A stretch of 64,000 nt of DNA, taken from the NCBI RefSeq assembly GCF_006345805.1, contig NC_043010.1, forward strand, positions 24,614,001-24,678,000. Reading direction: 5' to 3'. The DNA is from Octopus sinensis. Its lineage: Eukaryota. The notes beneath the pieces were generated by a model, which made no database searches, was not told the origin of the DNA, and saw nothing but the letters and a program-made list of their open reading frames with translations. This document shows positions 2,059 through 63,910 of this stretch, piece after piece; position 1 is the first letter of the stretch; each line of letters begins with the position of its first letter. A program made the translations under genes and the position numbers.

Positions 2059-2416
2059 ATAGAATGGTTGTATACTGTCAATCTAACACGAACGTGACAG
2101 TAGGGGGGGGTCACCACTGCTGTTTAGCCCTAGGAAGCATCGACGCCTCCTGATGGCATTGACACATTTTTCCTGTGTCCTTATATACATTTACGAAGGG
2201 GAGACAAATATTTGTCTCCCCTTCGTAAATGTATATAAGGACACAGGAAAAATGTGTCGAAGCCAACAGGAGGCGTCGATGCTTCCTAGGGCTAAACAGC
2301 GGTGGTGACCCCGCCCCCCTACTGTCACGTTCGTGTTAGATTGACAGTATACAACCATTCTATCGCCCCATCAACGTACATGTCTCTACGAGAGATTTAG
2401 AAATTTAGTATTTCTG
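2059..2416. mobile_element. Foldback element family P1: ~305-bp near-perfect palindrome (2059-2363) plus 53-bp tail
   Basis: Arms atagaatggttg...gagacaaa / tttgtctc...caaccattctat centred at 2209-2210. Tail cgcc..cgtacat.tctctacgagagatttagaaatt is shared with the copy at 17449. Flanked by (TA)n. Confidence 0.8.
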
Positions 2417-2431
2417 ATATATATATATATA

Positions 2432-2740
2432 TAAAATTATAATTTAAGGTATCTAAGAGATACCACCACGCTGGAAATAGTAGTCAAAACTTGACTCTAA
2501 AACCACATTAAATGTTCACAGAGCAACAGGAGAGAAGGCATAGAGACAAAATAAACTAGCAAAAAAAATTCTGGATAATTACTGGTTTTAGAGTCAAGTT
2601 TTGACTGCTATTTCCAGCGTGGTGGTATCTCTAAGATACCCTAGATTATAATTTTAAATAATTATTACCTTTGAAAGGTTTTTATTCCCATGCTGGCTAC
2701 CTGATAATATCGGTATTTAAATATCGATCTTATCCATATT
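2432..2740. mobile_element. Foldback element: ~74-bp inverted arms (2432-2505, 2583-2656) plus ~85-bp tail
   Basis: taaaattataat...ctctaaaacca is mirrored by tggttttagag...attataatttta. The left arm abuts (TA)n and the tail ends in (TA)n. Confidence 0.7.
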
Positions 2741-2849
2741 TATATATAAATATATTTATATATATATATATATAATATATATATATATATATATATATAT
2801 ATATATATATATAAATATATAGGAAAAAAGCAACAAGAATGGATTAAAA

Positions 2850-2937
2850 TCTCGGTACGATCGTTTCGTACGAGGACATCTTTAATAAGCTACAAAAAAT
2901 GCAGTGAATACAGATGGCTCGTACTCGTCAGCCGAAA
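2850..2937 (-). ncRNA. Type I hammerhead ribozyme motif (intact core)
   Basis: uuucgg-CUGACGA-guacgag..(~43 nt)..cucguac-GAAAC-gauc-GUA-ccgaga on the minus strand. Confidence 0.72.
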
Positions 2938-3776
2938 AGACATCAGAGAATTCCCAAACATCAAAAGGGGTAGATACAAAAGCGGTTGTAAGATTAACTG
3001 CATTGAAGAAAGTTCGATTCATGGAGATCCGATGAAAGGTTTTAAACTTATAGAATTTGTGCATGTCTACATATAGCTCATATTGAATTTTTAATCAAGT
3101 TGTGTGAGGAGATTTAGGGTACAATCATGCGAAAATATCAGGGAATCCGAATGAGAAGCAACTTGTGTCCATCCCCTTAGCTTCCCCTTTCCTTTCTCTT
3201 TGATAGCTTTAATAGCAGTAACTGATTAAATTCCACTTCCTTCCTCCTCTCTCTGTGATTCTTGTAAAGTTCATTAACAACCTGCACCTCTACAATATAA
3301 GACTGTCATTTTGCTTCTCATTCGGATTCCCTGATATTTTCGCATGATTGTACCCTAAATCTCTTCACAAAACTGGATTATGAACTATAAGGACATGCAC
3401 ATATTCTGTAAGTTCAAGACTTTTTATCGGATCTCCAAGAATCGAACTTATCTGCGATTCTTGTAAATTTCAATAACAATCTGTTCCTCTACACGATATG
3501 ACAGTCACTTTGCTTTTACTCAGACTTTCCTCTACATGATAAGGCAGTCACTTTGCCTCTTACTCGGATTTTCAGAAATTTTGCATGACTGTATCCGAAA
3601 ATTTCTTCACACAACTTGATTAAAAATTCAATATGAGCTATATGTAGACATGCACAAATTCTATAAGTTTAAAACCTTTCATCGGATCTCCATGAATCGA
3701 ACTTTCTTCAATGCAGTTAATCTTACAACCTCTTTTGTATCTACCCCTTTTGATGTTTGGGAATTCTCTGATGTTT

Positions 3777-3863
3777 TTTCGGCTGACGAGTACGAGCCAT
3801 CTGTATTCACTGCATTTTTGTAGCTTATTAAAGATGTCCTCGTACGAAACGATCGTACCGAGA
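3777..3863 (+). ncRNA. Type I hammerhead ribozyme motif (intact core)
   Basis: Stem I tttcgg(3777-82)/ccgaga(3858-63); CTGACGA 3783-89; stem II gtacgag/ctcgtac; GAAA 3846-49; palindromic C-GATC-G; cleavage triplet GTA 3855-57. Confidence 0.75.
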
Positions 3864-60684: not shown

Positions 60685-61085
60685 GTAAGGCGGCGAGCTA
60701 GTAGAAACTTTAGCATCCCGGGCGAAGTGCTAAGCGGTCTGCCGTTACGTTCTGAGTTCAAATTCCGCCGAGGTCGACTTTGCCGTTCATCCTTTACCAG
60801 TTACGCACTGCGGTCGATGTAATCGACTTAATCCCTATGTCTGTCCTTGTTTGCCCCCTCTATGTTTAGCCTCTTGTGGGCAATAAAGAAATAAGAAACG
60901 TTAGCACGCCGGGCGAAATGCTTAGCAGTATTTCGTCTGTCTTTAAGTTCAGAGTTCAAATTCCGCCGAGGTCGGCTTTGCATTTCATCCTTTCGGGGTC
61001 GATAAATTAAGTACCAGCTGCGTACTGGGGTCGATCAAATCGACTGGCCCCCTACCCAAAAATATGGGGCCTTGTGCCTTGAATA
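60685..61085 (+). mobile_element. SINE family 1, dimeric (junction A, ends in tail type 2)
   Basis: aaggcggcgagc head; aaagaaataagaaacgttagcac junction; ggggccttgtgcct tail. Confidence 0.85.
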
Positions 61086-61986
61086 GAAAAGACTCCGGAG
61101 CCGTCTTCAGGCCGTGGGAGAAACGGCGGGGGGTAACTACTTTGAGCAAACTTTTATCTCCCAGCCACAATATCTAGTTTATATTTCTTGATATTTTAAA
61201 ATACTTAATAGGATATTATGTTTTCTTCTCCTTTTATGCAAACTGCCAGATTTAGCCCGAACAGCCTGCGTTCAAACTGAGTGTTAACTAGATTAAGTTA
61301 AATCTTCAGGTCTTTTCTCAATTGCACTTTGTCAAATTTAAAGTAGCAGAAGGTTTCTATAGAATATTCCCTTATCGTACGTTCAATTGAGATTCAAATA
61401 TATTGAAATAGCAACCCGTCAATTCTCCATGAAGGCAGAAAAATTATCTCCAGTCTGTTGCTTTTAATATGAAATTTCAGACATGAATTTTCCAGTCAAA
61501 TGAATTACCTCAAAACCAAAAACTTAATCTGGGTAATGGGCTCGGCTCGTCGAAGTGTAAGTAGCATTTCCTTACACACACACACACATGCACAGAGTCA
61601 TGCACACATACAAACACCTCGCACACACATAAATGTGCGTCTTTGTATGGTCGCCCTCACATTCCATTCCCATGAAGGGTTTTCAACGTGGACCTTTAAC
61701 CTAATTAACACTAGAATGTAACACATAGGTAAAGGTATACGTGTGTGTGTGTGTGTGAGGACATGTATTAGTGTTTGCTTTTGTATCAAGCTATATCTAA
61801 AAACAACTTAACATTAACCTGACGGTTTCATTACTCAATGCTTTTAGCGGAGTACATTTAAAAATTTTACAAGGAAACGATTGACAGTAACTTCGAAATT
61901 TCGATTTCTTTGCCTTCATCAGTCTGTCTGATGAGGTTGACCAAGTCGAATATGTATGTATGTATGTATGTATGTATGTATATATA

Positions 61987-63008
61987 CAGAGGTTGGGCAC
62001 GATAACAGGAACACCTTGTTAAATGGAATTGTTATTATCTAATACAGAGTTGTTTCATTTTTTGCATCGGTTATAGCTTTAATACATCGAGAAATTGAGT
62101 CGTAGAAGTTCTGAACGGTTTTTAAGGGAATTCGGAGCCATTCTTCACGTGAAACCTCCTTTACCTCTTTCTGCACCATAAATATATGATCATATTGAGA
62201 TCCGGTGATTAGTGGATGGGGTGGGAGAACGATAAAAATCATCGACTTCAGTAACGATTTTGAATAATACTCGTCGTATGAATCGACACATTATCGTCCT
62301 GGAAGATTGCGCTATCATCAGGGAACTATGCTTCTACCTTGAGATGAACATGATCAGACAAAATACACAGATGATATTTGGCGTTAGCTCTGCTGTATAG
62401 AGCCAGGAGAATTCCGTGATATGGCTGCCCAAATTGTCACTGTATCACTTCCATGCTTCCCAGTTGAGGTCAGGAAATTAGGGTTGAAGGCTTCTATTCC
62501 CTGTCTCCCGAATTAAGAAAAATTGGGAATGATGATTCATTAGAGATGATATTATTCCACTGAGTCATTGACTGTTTCTGATACTCTAGACACTATTTTT
62601 TTTTTTCTGTTTCTTGCTGTTAATGTGGGAACAGGAGTTTTTTAGCAATTGCAGCCCTCCTGTATTGTCCAGCTTTAGGAAACTCTCGACACAAAGTTGG
62701 AAATGTGAGGGATTAACTCTACTTTCACTTTTGCTACTTTCACTTTTTTTCTTGTTTTGTTCTTTTTATTTGTAAGCAAAATACGTTTCAGTCTTCTGCA
62801 GCCCCTTTCAATGACCATCACCTTTCCGCTGAAAATTATCCTTGCAAGAGCTGGCTTTACCTTGGTTTTTGAATACCAACAAGATTTGAGAGAGTGTACT
62901 TCTTGAAACATTAAACAATTCAGCGGTTTTAGTGTCTGAAGTGACAGAAATGCGCGCTCCGACAATTTTCCAATGCATAAGTAGATAAATGAACGATGGT
63001 GTTTCCAC
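61987..63008 (-). mobile_element. Degenerate Tc1-like transposon
   Basis: One TIR ta|cagaggttgggc; IVGAR..KTAELFNVSR (HTH), IFQDDN, EEWLRIP..TVQNFYDSISR..AK. Confidence 0.8.
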
Positions 63009-63354
63009 GCGCCCGCGTGTGTGCATGTGTGTGTCTGTGTCTGCGTATGTGTGTGTGTGTATATGTGCGTGTGAACGCGCGCGCGTATTTATGCTTGTCC
63101 AAACTCACCCAACCGCATGAGAACGATAAAGTTCGACAAAAGAATCCGATAGATACGTACCAGACTTATAAAGAAAAGTCCTGATTTTCCATTCCTTCGA
63201 GTAAACATTTCAAGGCAGTGATTCAGGACAGCTGCATTGCGATGGCTGGAGTAGAGGAGCAAAACGAGTGTGTATACATGAGTGTGAGTATGTGTGTGGG
63301 GTGTAAGTATGTATATATATACATAGATACATATACACACACACACACACAGAT

Positions 63355-63505
63355 GTATGGTAAGAAGCTTGTTTCCCAACTACATGGTTCCGGGTTCAGT
63401 TACACTTCGTGACACCTTGGACAAGTGTTTTCTACTATAGCCTCAGGCCGACTAAAGCCTTGTGAGTGGATTTGGTAGACGGAAACTGTAAGAATCCTGT
63501 CGTAT
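63355..63505 (+). mobile_element. SINE family 2, 5' half
   Basis: ggtaagaagcttgtttcccaac..gacaccttggacaagtg..gtagacggaaactg. Confidence 0.85.
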
Positions 63506-63520
63506 ACATATATATATATA

Positions 63521-63910
63521 TAAAATTAAATAAGGGTAGAAATTGATATTAGTCAATTAAAACCAGTGGCCTAGCATATTTAAAAAAATCCGAAGATTAA
63601 AAATATTTTTTTACATACAAAATTTAAAGGACTGACCACTAAAAGTGGACAGTCTATATGCTAGATATAGACGTCAAAATCGCTATTTTTCTGAGATCAG
63701 AAATTTACTTTGCAGTTAATAAACTAGTGAAACTAATTAGTACATAGTAATCGTTTTTTATTTCGTATATTTTCATTTGTCTTTCATTTAGTTTTTTGCT
63801 GAGGTTTTTCTTGAGAACACATTCTTCGTGAAAAATAGCGATTTTGACGTCTATATCTAGCATATAGACTGTCCACTTTAAGTGGTCAGTCCTTTAAATT
63901 TTGTATGTAA
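63521..63910. mobile_element. Foldback element: 90-bp tail, 80-bp inverted arms (63611-63690 / 63831-63910), 3' half of a hammerhead in the spacer
   Basis: GAAAC-taatta-GTA-catagt at 63729-63748; inserted at the microsatellite of a SINE family 2 copy. Confidence 0.8.

Follow-up and report, generated by a model that had tools for sequence, protein, structure and literature searches.

Penelope-like elements (PLEs) carry minimal hammerhead ribozymes that are recognised by a G10.1-C11.1 pair, an unpaired base between A9 and position 10.1, a long helix II, a short helix I and a palindromic, dimerising helix III. The motifs occur in pairs 100-700 bp apart on opposite strands, and most copies reside in truncated elements (PMC4209133). 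The PLEs of the Hydra clade are short, always contain hammerheads, are nearly always found in (TA)n and have been reported from Mollusca; their endonuclease has a CxCX5C linker and CxxC and CxH motifs around conserved E and N residues, with no CCHH motif, and their reverse transcriptase (RT) carries the motif DKT (PMC8557442). Naiad PLEs contain no hammerhead, target (TA)n and have left remnants in cephalopods (PMC8557442). A second group of ribozyme-bearing repeats, the metazoan retrozymes without long terminal repeats (non-LTR retrozymes), consists of small non-coding hammerhead repeats thought to be derived from PLEs (PMC7229834; bioRxiv 10.64898/2026.07.22.740005). Here, we analysed a stretch of 64,000 nucleotides from Octopus sinensis (contig NC_043010.1 of assembly GCF_006345805.1, positions 24,614,001 to 24,678,000; hereafter the window, whose own numbering is used throughout). 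An initial annotation, made from the sequence alone, had described it as hosting a diverse population of non-autonomous, retrozyme-like foldback elements with hammerheads, derived from PLEs and inserted in microsatellites. The core of this interpretation, ribozyme-bearing PLE derivatives inserted in (TA)n, proved to be right: at least 15 short units from about ten unrelated families are most probably PLE insertions, many of them with minimal hammerheads and mostly located at (TA)n.

We searched the window with a strict hammerhead descriptor, comprising the core CUGANGA, an optional extra base, GAAA, a helix III of the form A...U, H17, and helices I and II that each span 4 bp or more. This search retrieved six complete motifs from four unrelated families; the reversed sequence contained none, and 30 dinucleotide shuffles averaged 0.10. 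The reversed control is a non-complemented reversal, which keeps every hairpin and every microsatellite. A second descriptor, which allowed one core mismatch and required both G10.1-C11.1 and a palindromic helix III, gave seven matches versus none in ten shuffles and in the reversed sequence; the seventh match is a dead copy at 36189-36270 with the core CUGGUGA. With the relaxed core NUGANNA of the initial annotation we obtained four matches versus 4.4 in shuffles, and therefore the enrichment rests on the canonical core. A frequency above that of dinucleotide shuffles, on which the initial annotation had made its claim depend, is thus seen for the strict core and not for the relaxed one. Allowing Watson-Crick covariation at positions 3 and 8 added a very good G3-C8 motif at 51491-51541 (- strand) and a poor one at 39337. 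The latter (39337-39424) was rejected as a chance match: its helix II has 4 bp with two G-U pairs, its helix I is mostly wobble and its helix III is non-palindromic. CUGACGA sites in the terminal inverted repeats (TIRs) of a Tc1 element (37496, 39040) and a palindrome at 61922/61928 were also rejected, as they lack a helix II. In total, the window holds about nine complete or near-complete motifs (six strict, one G3-C8, two imperfect) and four to six dead or partial ones, in good agreement with the "about 15" proposed before. They are listed here by insertion unit (U1-U14 and U3b, defined below), with a slash at the predicted cleavage site:

3777-3863, + strand: hammerhead in the right copy of U3, UUUCGG CUGACGA GUACGAG..CUCGUAC GAA ACGAUCGU A/CCGAGA, predicted cut after 3857
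2850-2937, - strand: hammerhead in the left (inverted) copy of U3, same motif as 3777-3863, predicted cut after 2856 on the - strand
39871-39884: ribozyme remnant of U3b, 3' half only, GAAACGAUUGUACC
16542-16560 (- strand) and 16767-16787 (+ strand): remnants in U4, GAAA plus palindrome, core absent
25238-25283, + strand: hammerhead in the right copy of U6, GACAC CUGACGA A GGCUG..CAGCC GAA ACGU U/GUGUU, with an extra A after A9
24858-24903, - strand: hammerhead in the left copy of U6, identical to that of the right copy except at N7 and in loop II
36853-36934, + strand: intact hammerhead in the inverted copy of U7, CUUUC CUGAUGA GAAGAU..GUCUUC GAA ACAUGUGU C/GAAAG, a GUC site
36189-36270, - strand: dead hammerhead in the main copy of U7, core CUGGUGA (A6 to G), ~290 nt downstream of an open reading frame (ORF) stop
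43676-43720, - strand: probable minimal hammerhead of U8, found by eye, GGACCA CUGAUGA G GUCAC..GUGAC GAA AGAACU C/UGGCC; imperfect, with a helix III of 1 bp and a bulged helix I
51046-51107, - strand: imperfect hammerhead in the left copy of U10, found by eye, CUGACGA, interrupted helix II, GAA AUCAAUUGAU A/
51226-51245: ribozyme remnant in the right copy of U10, 3' half or decayed
51491-51541, - strand: G3-C8 covariant hammerhead of U11, UUUGUCA GUGAACA G GUCGC..GCGAC GAA AAUAUU C/UGACAAA, with a 7-bp helix I, a 5-bp helix II and AAUAUU as helix III
58640-58707, - strand: hammerhead of U12, ACCAUG CUGAUGA U GGCUG..CAGCC GAA ACUAAAUUUAGU A/CAUGGU
63691-63747: decayed hammerhead in the + copy of U14

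The assignment to PLEs is supported by the structure of these motifs. The core C3-U4-G5-A6-N7-G8-A9 with G12-A13-A14-A15.1 and U16.1-H17 is present in six exact instances and one G3-C8 covariant. All motifs have the type I helix order, with 5-7 bp in helix I and 5-7 bp in helix II, and G10.1-C11.1, which the first descriptor did not demand, is found in every motif except that of U10, where helix II is interrupted. The unpaired base between A9 and position 10.1 is A in U6, U in U12 and G in U8 and U11, and is absent in U3 and U7. In the six strict motifs and the G3-C8 motif, helix III is a loop-less palindrome of 4-12 nt (ACGAUCGU, ACGU, ACAUGUGU, ACUAAAUUUAGU, AAUAUU). For four motifs, the lowest-energy dimer fold calculated with ViennaRNA is a double hammerhead, 6-11 kcal/mol better than two monomers, in which the core stays single-stranded, helix II folds as a hairpin and the two molecules pair through helices III and I. 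The ribozymes lie 45-175 nt from the 3' end of their element and always read outwards (U3/U3b, U6, U7, U8, U10, U12/U14, U11). While 13% of the columns differ between the two arms of U6, the four differences within the ribozyme are confined to N7 and loop II and leave the 36 constrained positions untouched, a pattern that points to sequence constraint on the ribozyme, but is suggestive only.

Judged by the published marks, the window motifs are predicted minimal type I hammerheads of the PLE type, carried by six families (U3/U3b, U6, U7, U8, U10, U12/U14) and by the adjacent U11. They share with the PLE hammerheads described so far the type I topology, the CUGANGA/GAAA core, G10.1-C11.1, the unpaired base after A9, a long helix II, a short helix I, the palindromic dimer helix III, the arrangement in opposite-strand pairs 100-700 bp apart, the location in truncated elements and a high diversity within one genome (PMC4209133). 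In contrast to the 1-2 bp with a small loop usually drawn for helix III, the palindrome is often longer in the window (8-12 nt). Loops of helix II that reach 42-45 nt in two families and a G3-C8 core in one motif also set the window apart from that collection, in which cephalopods were not among the genomes (PMC4209133). The earlier statement that most families contain a type I hammerhead holds for five of the nine families then listed, whereas those at 2059/17449, 2432, 16259 and 43930 have no credible one, their parses having come from the relaxed core. The motif assigned to the last of these is a probable hammerhead, but lies outside the foldback, in the separate adjacent unit U8 (43676-43720). 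Likewise, the second motif near 50943 (51491-51541) belongs to a separate adjacent unit, U11.

A coding remnant provides a second link to PLEs. The initial annotation had assigned the C-terminus of a GIY-YIG endonuclease to one of the units, which we could confirm:

36559-36843, - strand: ORF remnant, C-terminal half of a GIY-YIG endonuclease, ..R..NH..F....LSK.VW.LKD...W.IL....CNIC.SE...I....N..

This remnant of 95 codons is located within U7 on the same strand as the dead ribozyme and ends ~290 nt upstream of it. An exhaustive HMMER search with it found 1219 homologues (best 5e-20), while a word-indexed protein search with the same remnant found none and a crude GIY..YIG regular expression applied to six-frame translations gave nothing useful. 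The homologues are short ORFs and one 658-aa protein (P0125) with the RT-like motifs DKT and YRDD. Their C-terminal module reads CxCX5C ... VY ... YIG.T..FK.R..NH ... LSK.IW.LKD ... W.I ... CxxC.xEK ... LNKRSE ... CxH and thereby shows the complete Hydra-clade pattern; in the U7 remnant CxxC, E and N are kept, the linker is absent owing to truncation and CxH is degenerate. For the AlphaFold model of a homologue (pLDDT 91.4), the best PDB matches are the GIY-YIG nucleases T4 EndoII (probability 0.91, E 0.06) and Hpy188I. The contig that encodes P0125 (L002, from an ENA metagenome) contains a hammerhead of its own at 2478-2508 (+ strand) with a U3-A8 core, UUGAGAA GCCC-UUCG-GGGC GAA AUUGCAAU C, which overlaps the end of the P0125 ORF, and a TA-rich repeat at the contig end. 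A Logan contig (L009) whose endonuclease is of the U7 family shows the same order, with a decayed but homologous ribozyme region just downstream of the ORF remnant. The window resembles the Hydra-clade EN+ (endonuclease-containing) PLEs in the endonuclease pattern, complete in the homologues and partly kept in the U7 remnant, and in the combination of short elements, hammerheads and (TA)n, and differs from them in that only U7 can be tied to the clade, no RT is present and the CxH of the remnant is degenerate (PMC8557442).

When 150 of the homologues were compared with the window by TBLASTN, only U7 and, faintly, 13485-13595 were matched. The latter (+ strand, E 7e-5) is situated ~530 bp upstream of a TA/TACA microsatellite and may be another decayed PLE copy.

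To define the insertion units, we used self-BLASTN with low-complexity masking, which recovered every inverted-repeat element of the initial annotation with an arm identity of 84-99%. Artefact palindromes of the assembly were excluded, since the arms diverge by 1-16%. The material was split into 15 units with 30 termini (identities are those of the self-BLASTN pairs):

2059-2424, + strand: U1, foldback (pair 2059-2363, 95%), arms 2059-2210 and 2211-2363 without spacer, (TA)n on both sides, no hammerhead
2364-2417: tail of U1, 54 nt
2434-2745, + strand: U2, arms 2428-2505 and 2583-2660 (94%), tail of ~85 nt, flanked by two TA-rich runs, no hammerhead
2822-4011, + strand: U3, head-to-head copies, arms 2819-3161 and 3553-3894 (95%), (TA)n on both sides
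3895-4011: tail of U3, 117 nt
39810-40016, + strand: U3b, short relative of U3, foldback 39810-39919 (also recovered by self-BLASTN) and tail of ~97 nt, followed by (TA)32
16263-17012, - strand: U4, arms 16409-16542 and 16893-17021 (90%), TA-rich flanks, tail 16263-16408 at the left end only
17449-17987, + strand: U5, second copy of the U1 family, arms 17449-17615 and 17764-17930 (98%), unique centre of ~148 nt, tail 17931-17984, (TA)n on both sides, no hammerhead
24795-25337, no strand assigned: U6, head-to-head copies (24804-24989 and 25151-25337, 90%) with (TTA)n/(TAA)n at the centre, outer flanks not (TA)n
36152-36970, sense on the - strand: U7, 5'-truncated copy of a PLE, probably of the Hydra clade (pair 36141-36280 and 36843-36979, 94%), 3' end at (TA)13 (36125-36151)
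36843-36970: inverted copy of ~130 nt at the 5' end of U7
43498-43914, - strand: U8, solo unit between (TA)26 and (TA)6
43928-44362, no strand assigned: U9, 435-bp foldback (43915-44376, 89%) between (TA)6 and (TA)45, no hammerhead
50943-51349, no strand assigned: U10, head-to-head copies (50943-51067 and 51224-51349, 92%)
51352-51560, - strand: U11, separate 209-bp unit adjoining U10, TATATA on one side and (TA)9(TG)n on the other
58490-58891, - strand: U12, single copy, 3' end at (TA)n (58463-58489)
58892-59125, no strand assigned: U13, palindrome (58892-59133, 97%) of two inverted copies of the U12/U14-family tail plus the last 25 nt of the element, right end in (TA)n
63523-63910, + strand: U14, tail 63523-63610, inverted arm 63611-63691 (pair with 63830-63910, 99%), + copy 63692-63910, (TA)n on both sides

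Sequence comparison confirmed the three family pairs proposed before: 2059/17449 (U1/U5) share 88% identity, 58482/63521 (U12/U14) 79-90%, and 2819/39809 (U3/U3b) have their ends and tail in common. In two-copy units the ribozymes always point outwards and the 3' ends face the flanks, therefore the copies are joined 5' to 5'. The outer ends of the arms are always in common, whereas the inner ends vary: in U7 the inverted copy begins ~17 nt 5' of the ribozyme, in U10 the right copy begins within it, at G12, U1 lacks the 150-nt centre of U5, and in the U3 family U3b measures 207 bp versus 1190 bp for U3. One-sided tails had also been noted initially, and in three families we found them kept between copies at different loci. 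The U1/U5 tail follows the right arm with 54 nt (2364-2417 and 17931-17984), as does the U3/U3b tail with ~100-117 nt (3895-4011 and 39920-40016); the ~90-nt tail of U14 (63523-63610) stands beside the left arm, and the same sequence forms both arms of the palindrome 58892-59133 (U13). Because of the tail, the ends of U1, U2, U3, U3b, U4, U5 and U14 are asymmetric and their inverted repeats are not terminal. The tail-less copy has the same homologous end-point at independent loci in three families (two copies per family), a feature that is not part of the published description of PLE insertions (PMC8557442). U4 shows a partial tandem, the terminal 70 nt of its tail being repeated directly at 16821-16891.

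The right arm of U4 starts (16893) at the base after the predicted cut site of the GAAA-plus-palindrome remnant in the left copy (GUC/CAUAAUUAAUCC versus GAC/CAUUAAUCC). The template of U4 may have been a cleaved RNA, though a complete ribozyme is no longer there in support.

The units had been described as adjoining microsatellites. Indeed, 22 of the 30 termini lie within 12 bp of a (TA) run of at least four repeats, versus 6.6% at random positions (binomial 4e-20), while 24795-25337 (U6) and the left end of 50943 (U10) are not in (TA)n. Such runs make up ~4.5% of the window. As some unit boundaries were drawn at (TA)n runs, the figure of 22/30 is somewhat inflated; the arm ends defined by BLAST are independent of this. 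Several units cluster in single microsatellites (U1-U2-U3, U8-U9, U10-U11 and U12-U13).

An abundant short interspersed element (SINE), also present at Argonauta hians loci, passes directly into (TA)n at its 3' ends (63408-63505, 23001-23074, 44450-44506 and 15665-15760), and therefore many (TA)n targets are SINE tails. A 184-bp unit, probably of the same SINE family, occurs as tandem dimers at 14439-14806, 21095-21462 and 32445-32789, with 87-88% identity between units.

Taken together, the preferred explanation is insertion by the PLE machinery, with steps inferred from the published PLE model. The GIY-YIG endonuclease of autonomous relatives (probably of the Hydra clade in the case of U7) would nick (TA)n, and the reverse transcriptase would prime on the nick and copy the RNA from its 3' end, usually halting early. 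A strand switch would then add an inverted partial copy, and resolution would leave a one-sided tail. The typical product would be two copies of the 3' region of the element placed head to head, the upstream one inverted and its inner (5') break-point variable, with a family-specific tail of 54-117 nt at one outer end only and (TA)n at the flanks. The hammerhead would cut multimeric or paired transcripts of the source elements, because its loop-less palindromic helix III pairs only with a second copy. The copies in the window are probably mostly dead on arrival: an RT is absent, the ribozyme would be buried in the arm-arm hairpin of a read-through transcript, and several cores have decayed. 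The one-sided tails, and the building of U13 from the tail of a ribozyme family, argue for U1/U5, U2, U4 and U9 being PLE-type insertions as well. This arrangement of head-to-head copies with variable 5' truncation, a one-sided tail, a microsatellite target and one partial tandem (U4) matches the published insertion structure of PLEs (PMC8557442).

The novelty claimed for these elements was therefore overstated: the literature already describes opposite-strand minimal hammerheads in truncated PLEs (PMC4209133) as well as the inverted 5'-truncated copy, the tail on one side and the targeting of (TA)n (PMC8557442), and in Octopus PLEs have been annotated as an order of transposable elements (PMC13282606). 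Nor could we uphold the label "non-autonomous". At least U7 (36152-36970) is a 5'-truncated copy of a coding element, and the others are indistinguishable from dead 5'-truncated copies without the whole genome. Still, it is conceivable, and we put it forward only tentatively, that the ORF-less families with the same layout at independent loci (U1/U5, U3/U3b, U12-U14) are true non-autonomous parasites of the PLE machinery, in which each integration would place the inverted copy at one fixed internal site and a working ribozyme would not be needed.

Several observations weigh against assigning the units to PLEs. The window contains no PLE reverse transcriptase, and the single endonuclease remnant is the sole coding link; the RT ORFs present are of the type found in long interspersed elements (LINEs), and one tested upstream ORF encodes an APE-type endonuclease. 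Pfam recognised neither the remnant nor ten of its homologues, a profile search of PDB sequences returned nothing, and the match of the AlphaFold model is weak at an E value of 0.06, yet appears to indicate a GIY-YIG fold. Rfam gave no hammerhead match in the window at gathering score and none at E≤10 in windows of 160-200 nt centred on two of the motifs. This failure is expected, since those models do not accommodate a helix III without a loop, but it leaves the motifs with no curated support. The minimal hammerheads published for PLEs are poor cleavers in vitro. The tails are 54-117 nt long versus 30-40 bp for PLEs (PMC8557442). An empty-site comparison was of no help, as the orthologous locus of A. 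hians (L001) aligns only over the coding sequence of a G protein-coupled receptor (GPCR; 81% DNA identity). A Tc1/mariner element in the window is flanked by (TA)n as well, therefore TA flanks alone are not diagnostic. Finally, U1/U5, U2, U4 and U9 contain no hammerhead, even with one core mismatch allowed, and no coding remnant.

The whole-window list of Rfam E values is dominated by microsatellite look-alikes of microRNA families. Most of these stem from two very long degenerate (TA)n arrays that fold on themselves, 18801-19592 (~790 bp) and 34415-34981 (~570 bp). In 28 kb of A. hians DNA, we found no canonical hammerhead.

The foldbacks without a hammerhead (U1/U5, U2, U4, U9, U13) might alternatively be foldback DNA transposons or resemble miniature inverted-repeat transposable elements (MITEs), with TA targets and with microsatellite sites shared with PLE copies. 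They lack ribozyme and coding remnants, a genuine Tc1/mariner element, TIRs included, occupies 37456-39080 with a (TA)n run on either side, and a TA duplication would be hidden inside (TA)n. Like Tc1/mariner MITEs, the window units are small, AT-rich, equipped with inverted repeats and located at TA-rich sites. But their inverted repeats are not terminal, being followed by a tail that in U1/U5 and U2 is one-sided and kept between loci, their inner boundaries vary, and the window units include ribozymes and one retroelement endonuclease remnant. Moreover, U4 has a tail and a partial direct repeat, U13 is made from the tail of the hammerhead-bearing U12/U14 family, the arms show no resemblance to the Tc1 TIR, and the absence of a hammerhead does not separate these units from the Naiad PLEs, which also target (TA)n (PMC8557442). 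We therefore regard a DNA-transposon origin of these foldbacks as unlikely. The Tc1/mariner element itself (37456-39080; TIRs ACATTGCGGCCAAAATG...) is bordered by (TA)30 and (TA)13, and its DDE_3 transposase is split over two overlapping ORFs on the - strand (38227-38757 and 37724-38272).

We also considered whether the units are metazoan non-LTR retrozymes, whose tandem ribozyme repeats give a transcript that is cleaved at two sites and closed into a circle. In favour of this are the hammerheads, the small size of the AT-rich, non-coding elements, a 2026 preprint that traces animal retrozymes to the pseudo-LTRs of PLEs (bioRxiv 10.64898/2026.07.22.740005), and a pair of ribozymes ~440 nt apart on the same strand (51491-51541 and 51046-51107). 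These two motifs, however, belong to unrelated sequences, and no family of the window has head-to-tail repeats with same-strand ribozymes. Retrozymes consist of head-to-tail tandems with repeats of 170-400 bp, contain canonical type I ribozymes and form circular RNAs, whereas the window units are inverted pairs or solo copies with minimal motifs of the PLE type on opposite strands (PMC7229834; bioRxiv 10.64898/2026.07.22.740005). The term "retrozyme-like" is therefore not appropriate, and a retrozyme origin seems very improbable. Finally, a chance origin of the hammerhead parses from AT-rich hairpin DNA, with the elements being unclassified repeats, would agree with a relaxed core no commoner than in shuffles and with the lack of Rfam matches, but is hardly credible in view of the 6-7 strict-core matches versus 0-0.1 in the controls, including the hairpin-preserving reversed sequence, of PLE-specific features beyond the descriptor and of one unit that joins the motif to an endonuclease remnant.

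Besides the PLE-type units, the window contains LINE RT/APE ORFs, the Tc1/mariner transposase, a Helitron-type PIF1 helicase and an intronless rhodopsin-type GPCR:

48540-49796, + strand: intact intronless ORF of 418 aa for a rhodopsin-family GPCR (7tm_1, E 4e-31), cholecystokinin-receptor-like; the protein is 91% identical to that of A. hians and 98% to a Logan-assembled protein, the coding DNA 81% to A. hians, which fits an octopod source not closely related to Argonauta
57146-58321, + strand: ORF of 391 aa in which a PIF1 helicase and a Pif1 2B domain are recognised, very probably the helicase portion of a Helitron
52947-53824: 878-bp inverted-repeat element with arms 83% identical; by eye its frames resemble the N-terminal helix-turn-helix of a mariner transposase, and Pfam gave no significant match

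Of modest interest are the diversity of families within 64 kb, the G3-C8 core as a natural variant, the length of the tails and the reproducibility of their junctions. If the ORF-less families are indeed parasites of the PLE machinery, they would allow the second-strand step of PLE integration to be approached from the sequence and represent a large unannotated class of "retro-foldbacks" in cephalopod genomes. More generally, our results suggest that many MITE-like foldbacks at (TA)n in an octopod genome are really truncated PLE insertions, many of them with recognisable hammerheads, and that cephalopod repeat annotation is likely to file such units as MITEs or unknown repeats. If the density observed here (6-9 good motifs per 64 kb) applied genome-wide, hundreds of thousands of ribozyme motifs would be expected, an extrapolation from one window. 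The analysis adds examples of natural core covariation, G3-C8 in the window and U3-A8 in a related external contig, as well as of long one-sided tails. It leaves the picture of PLE biology unchanged and extends it to another lineage with clean examples.

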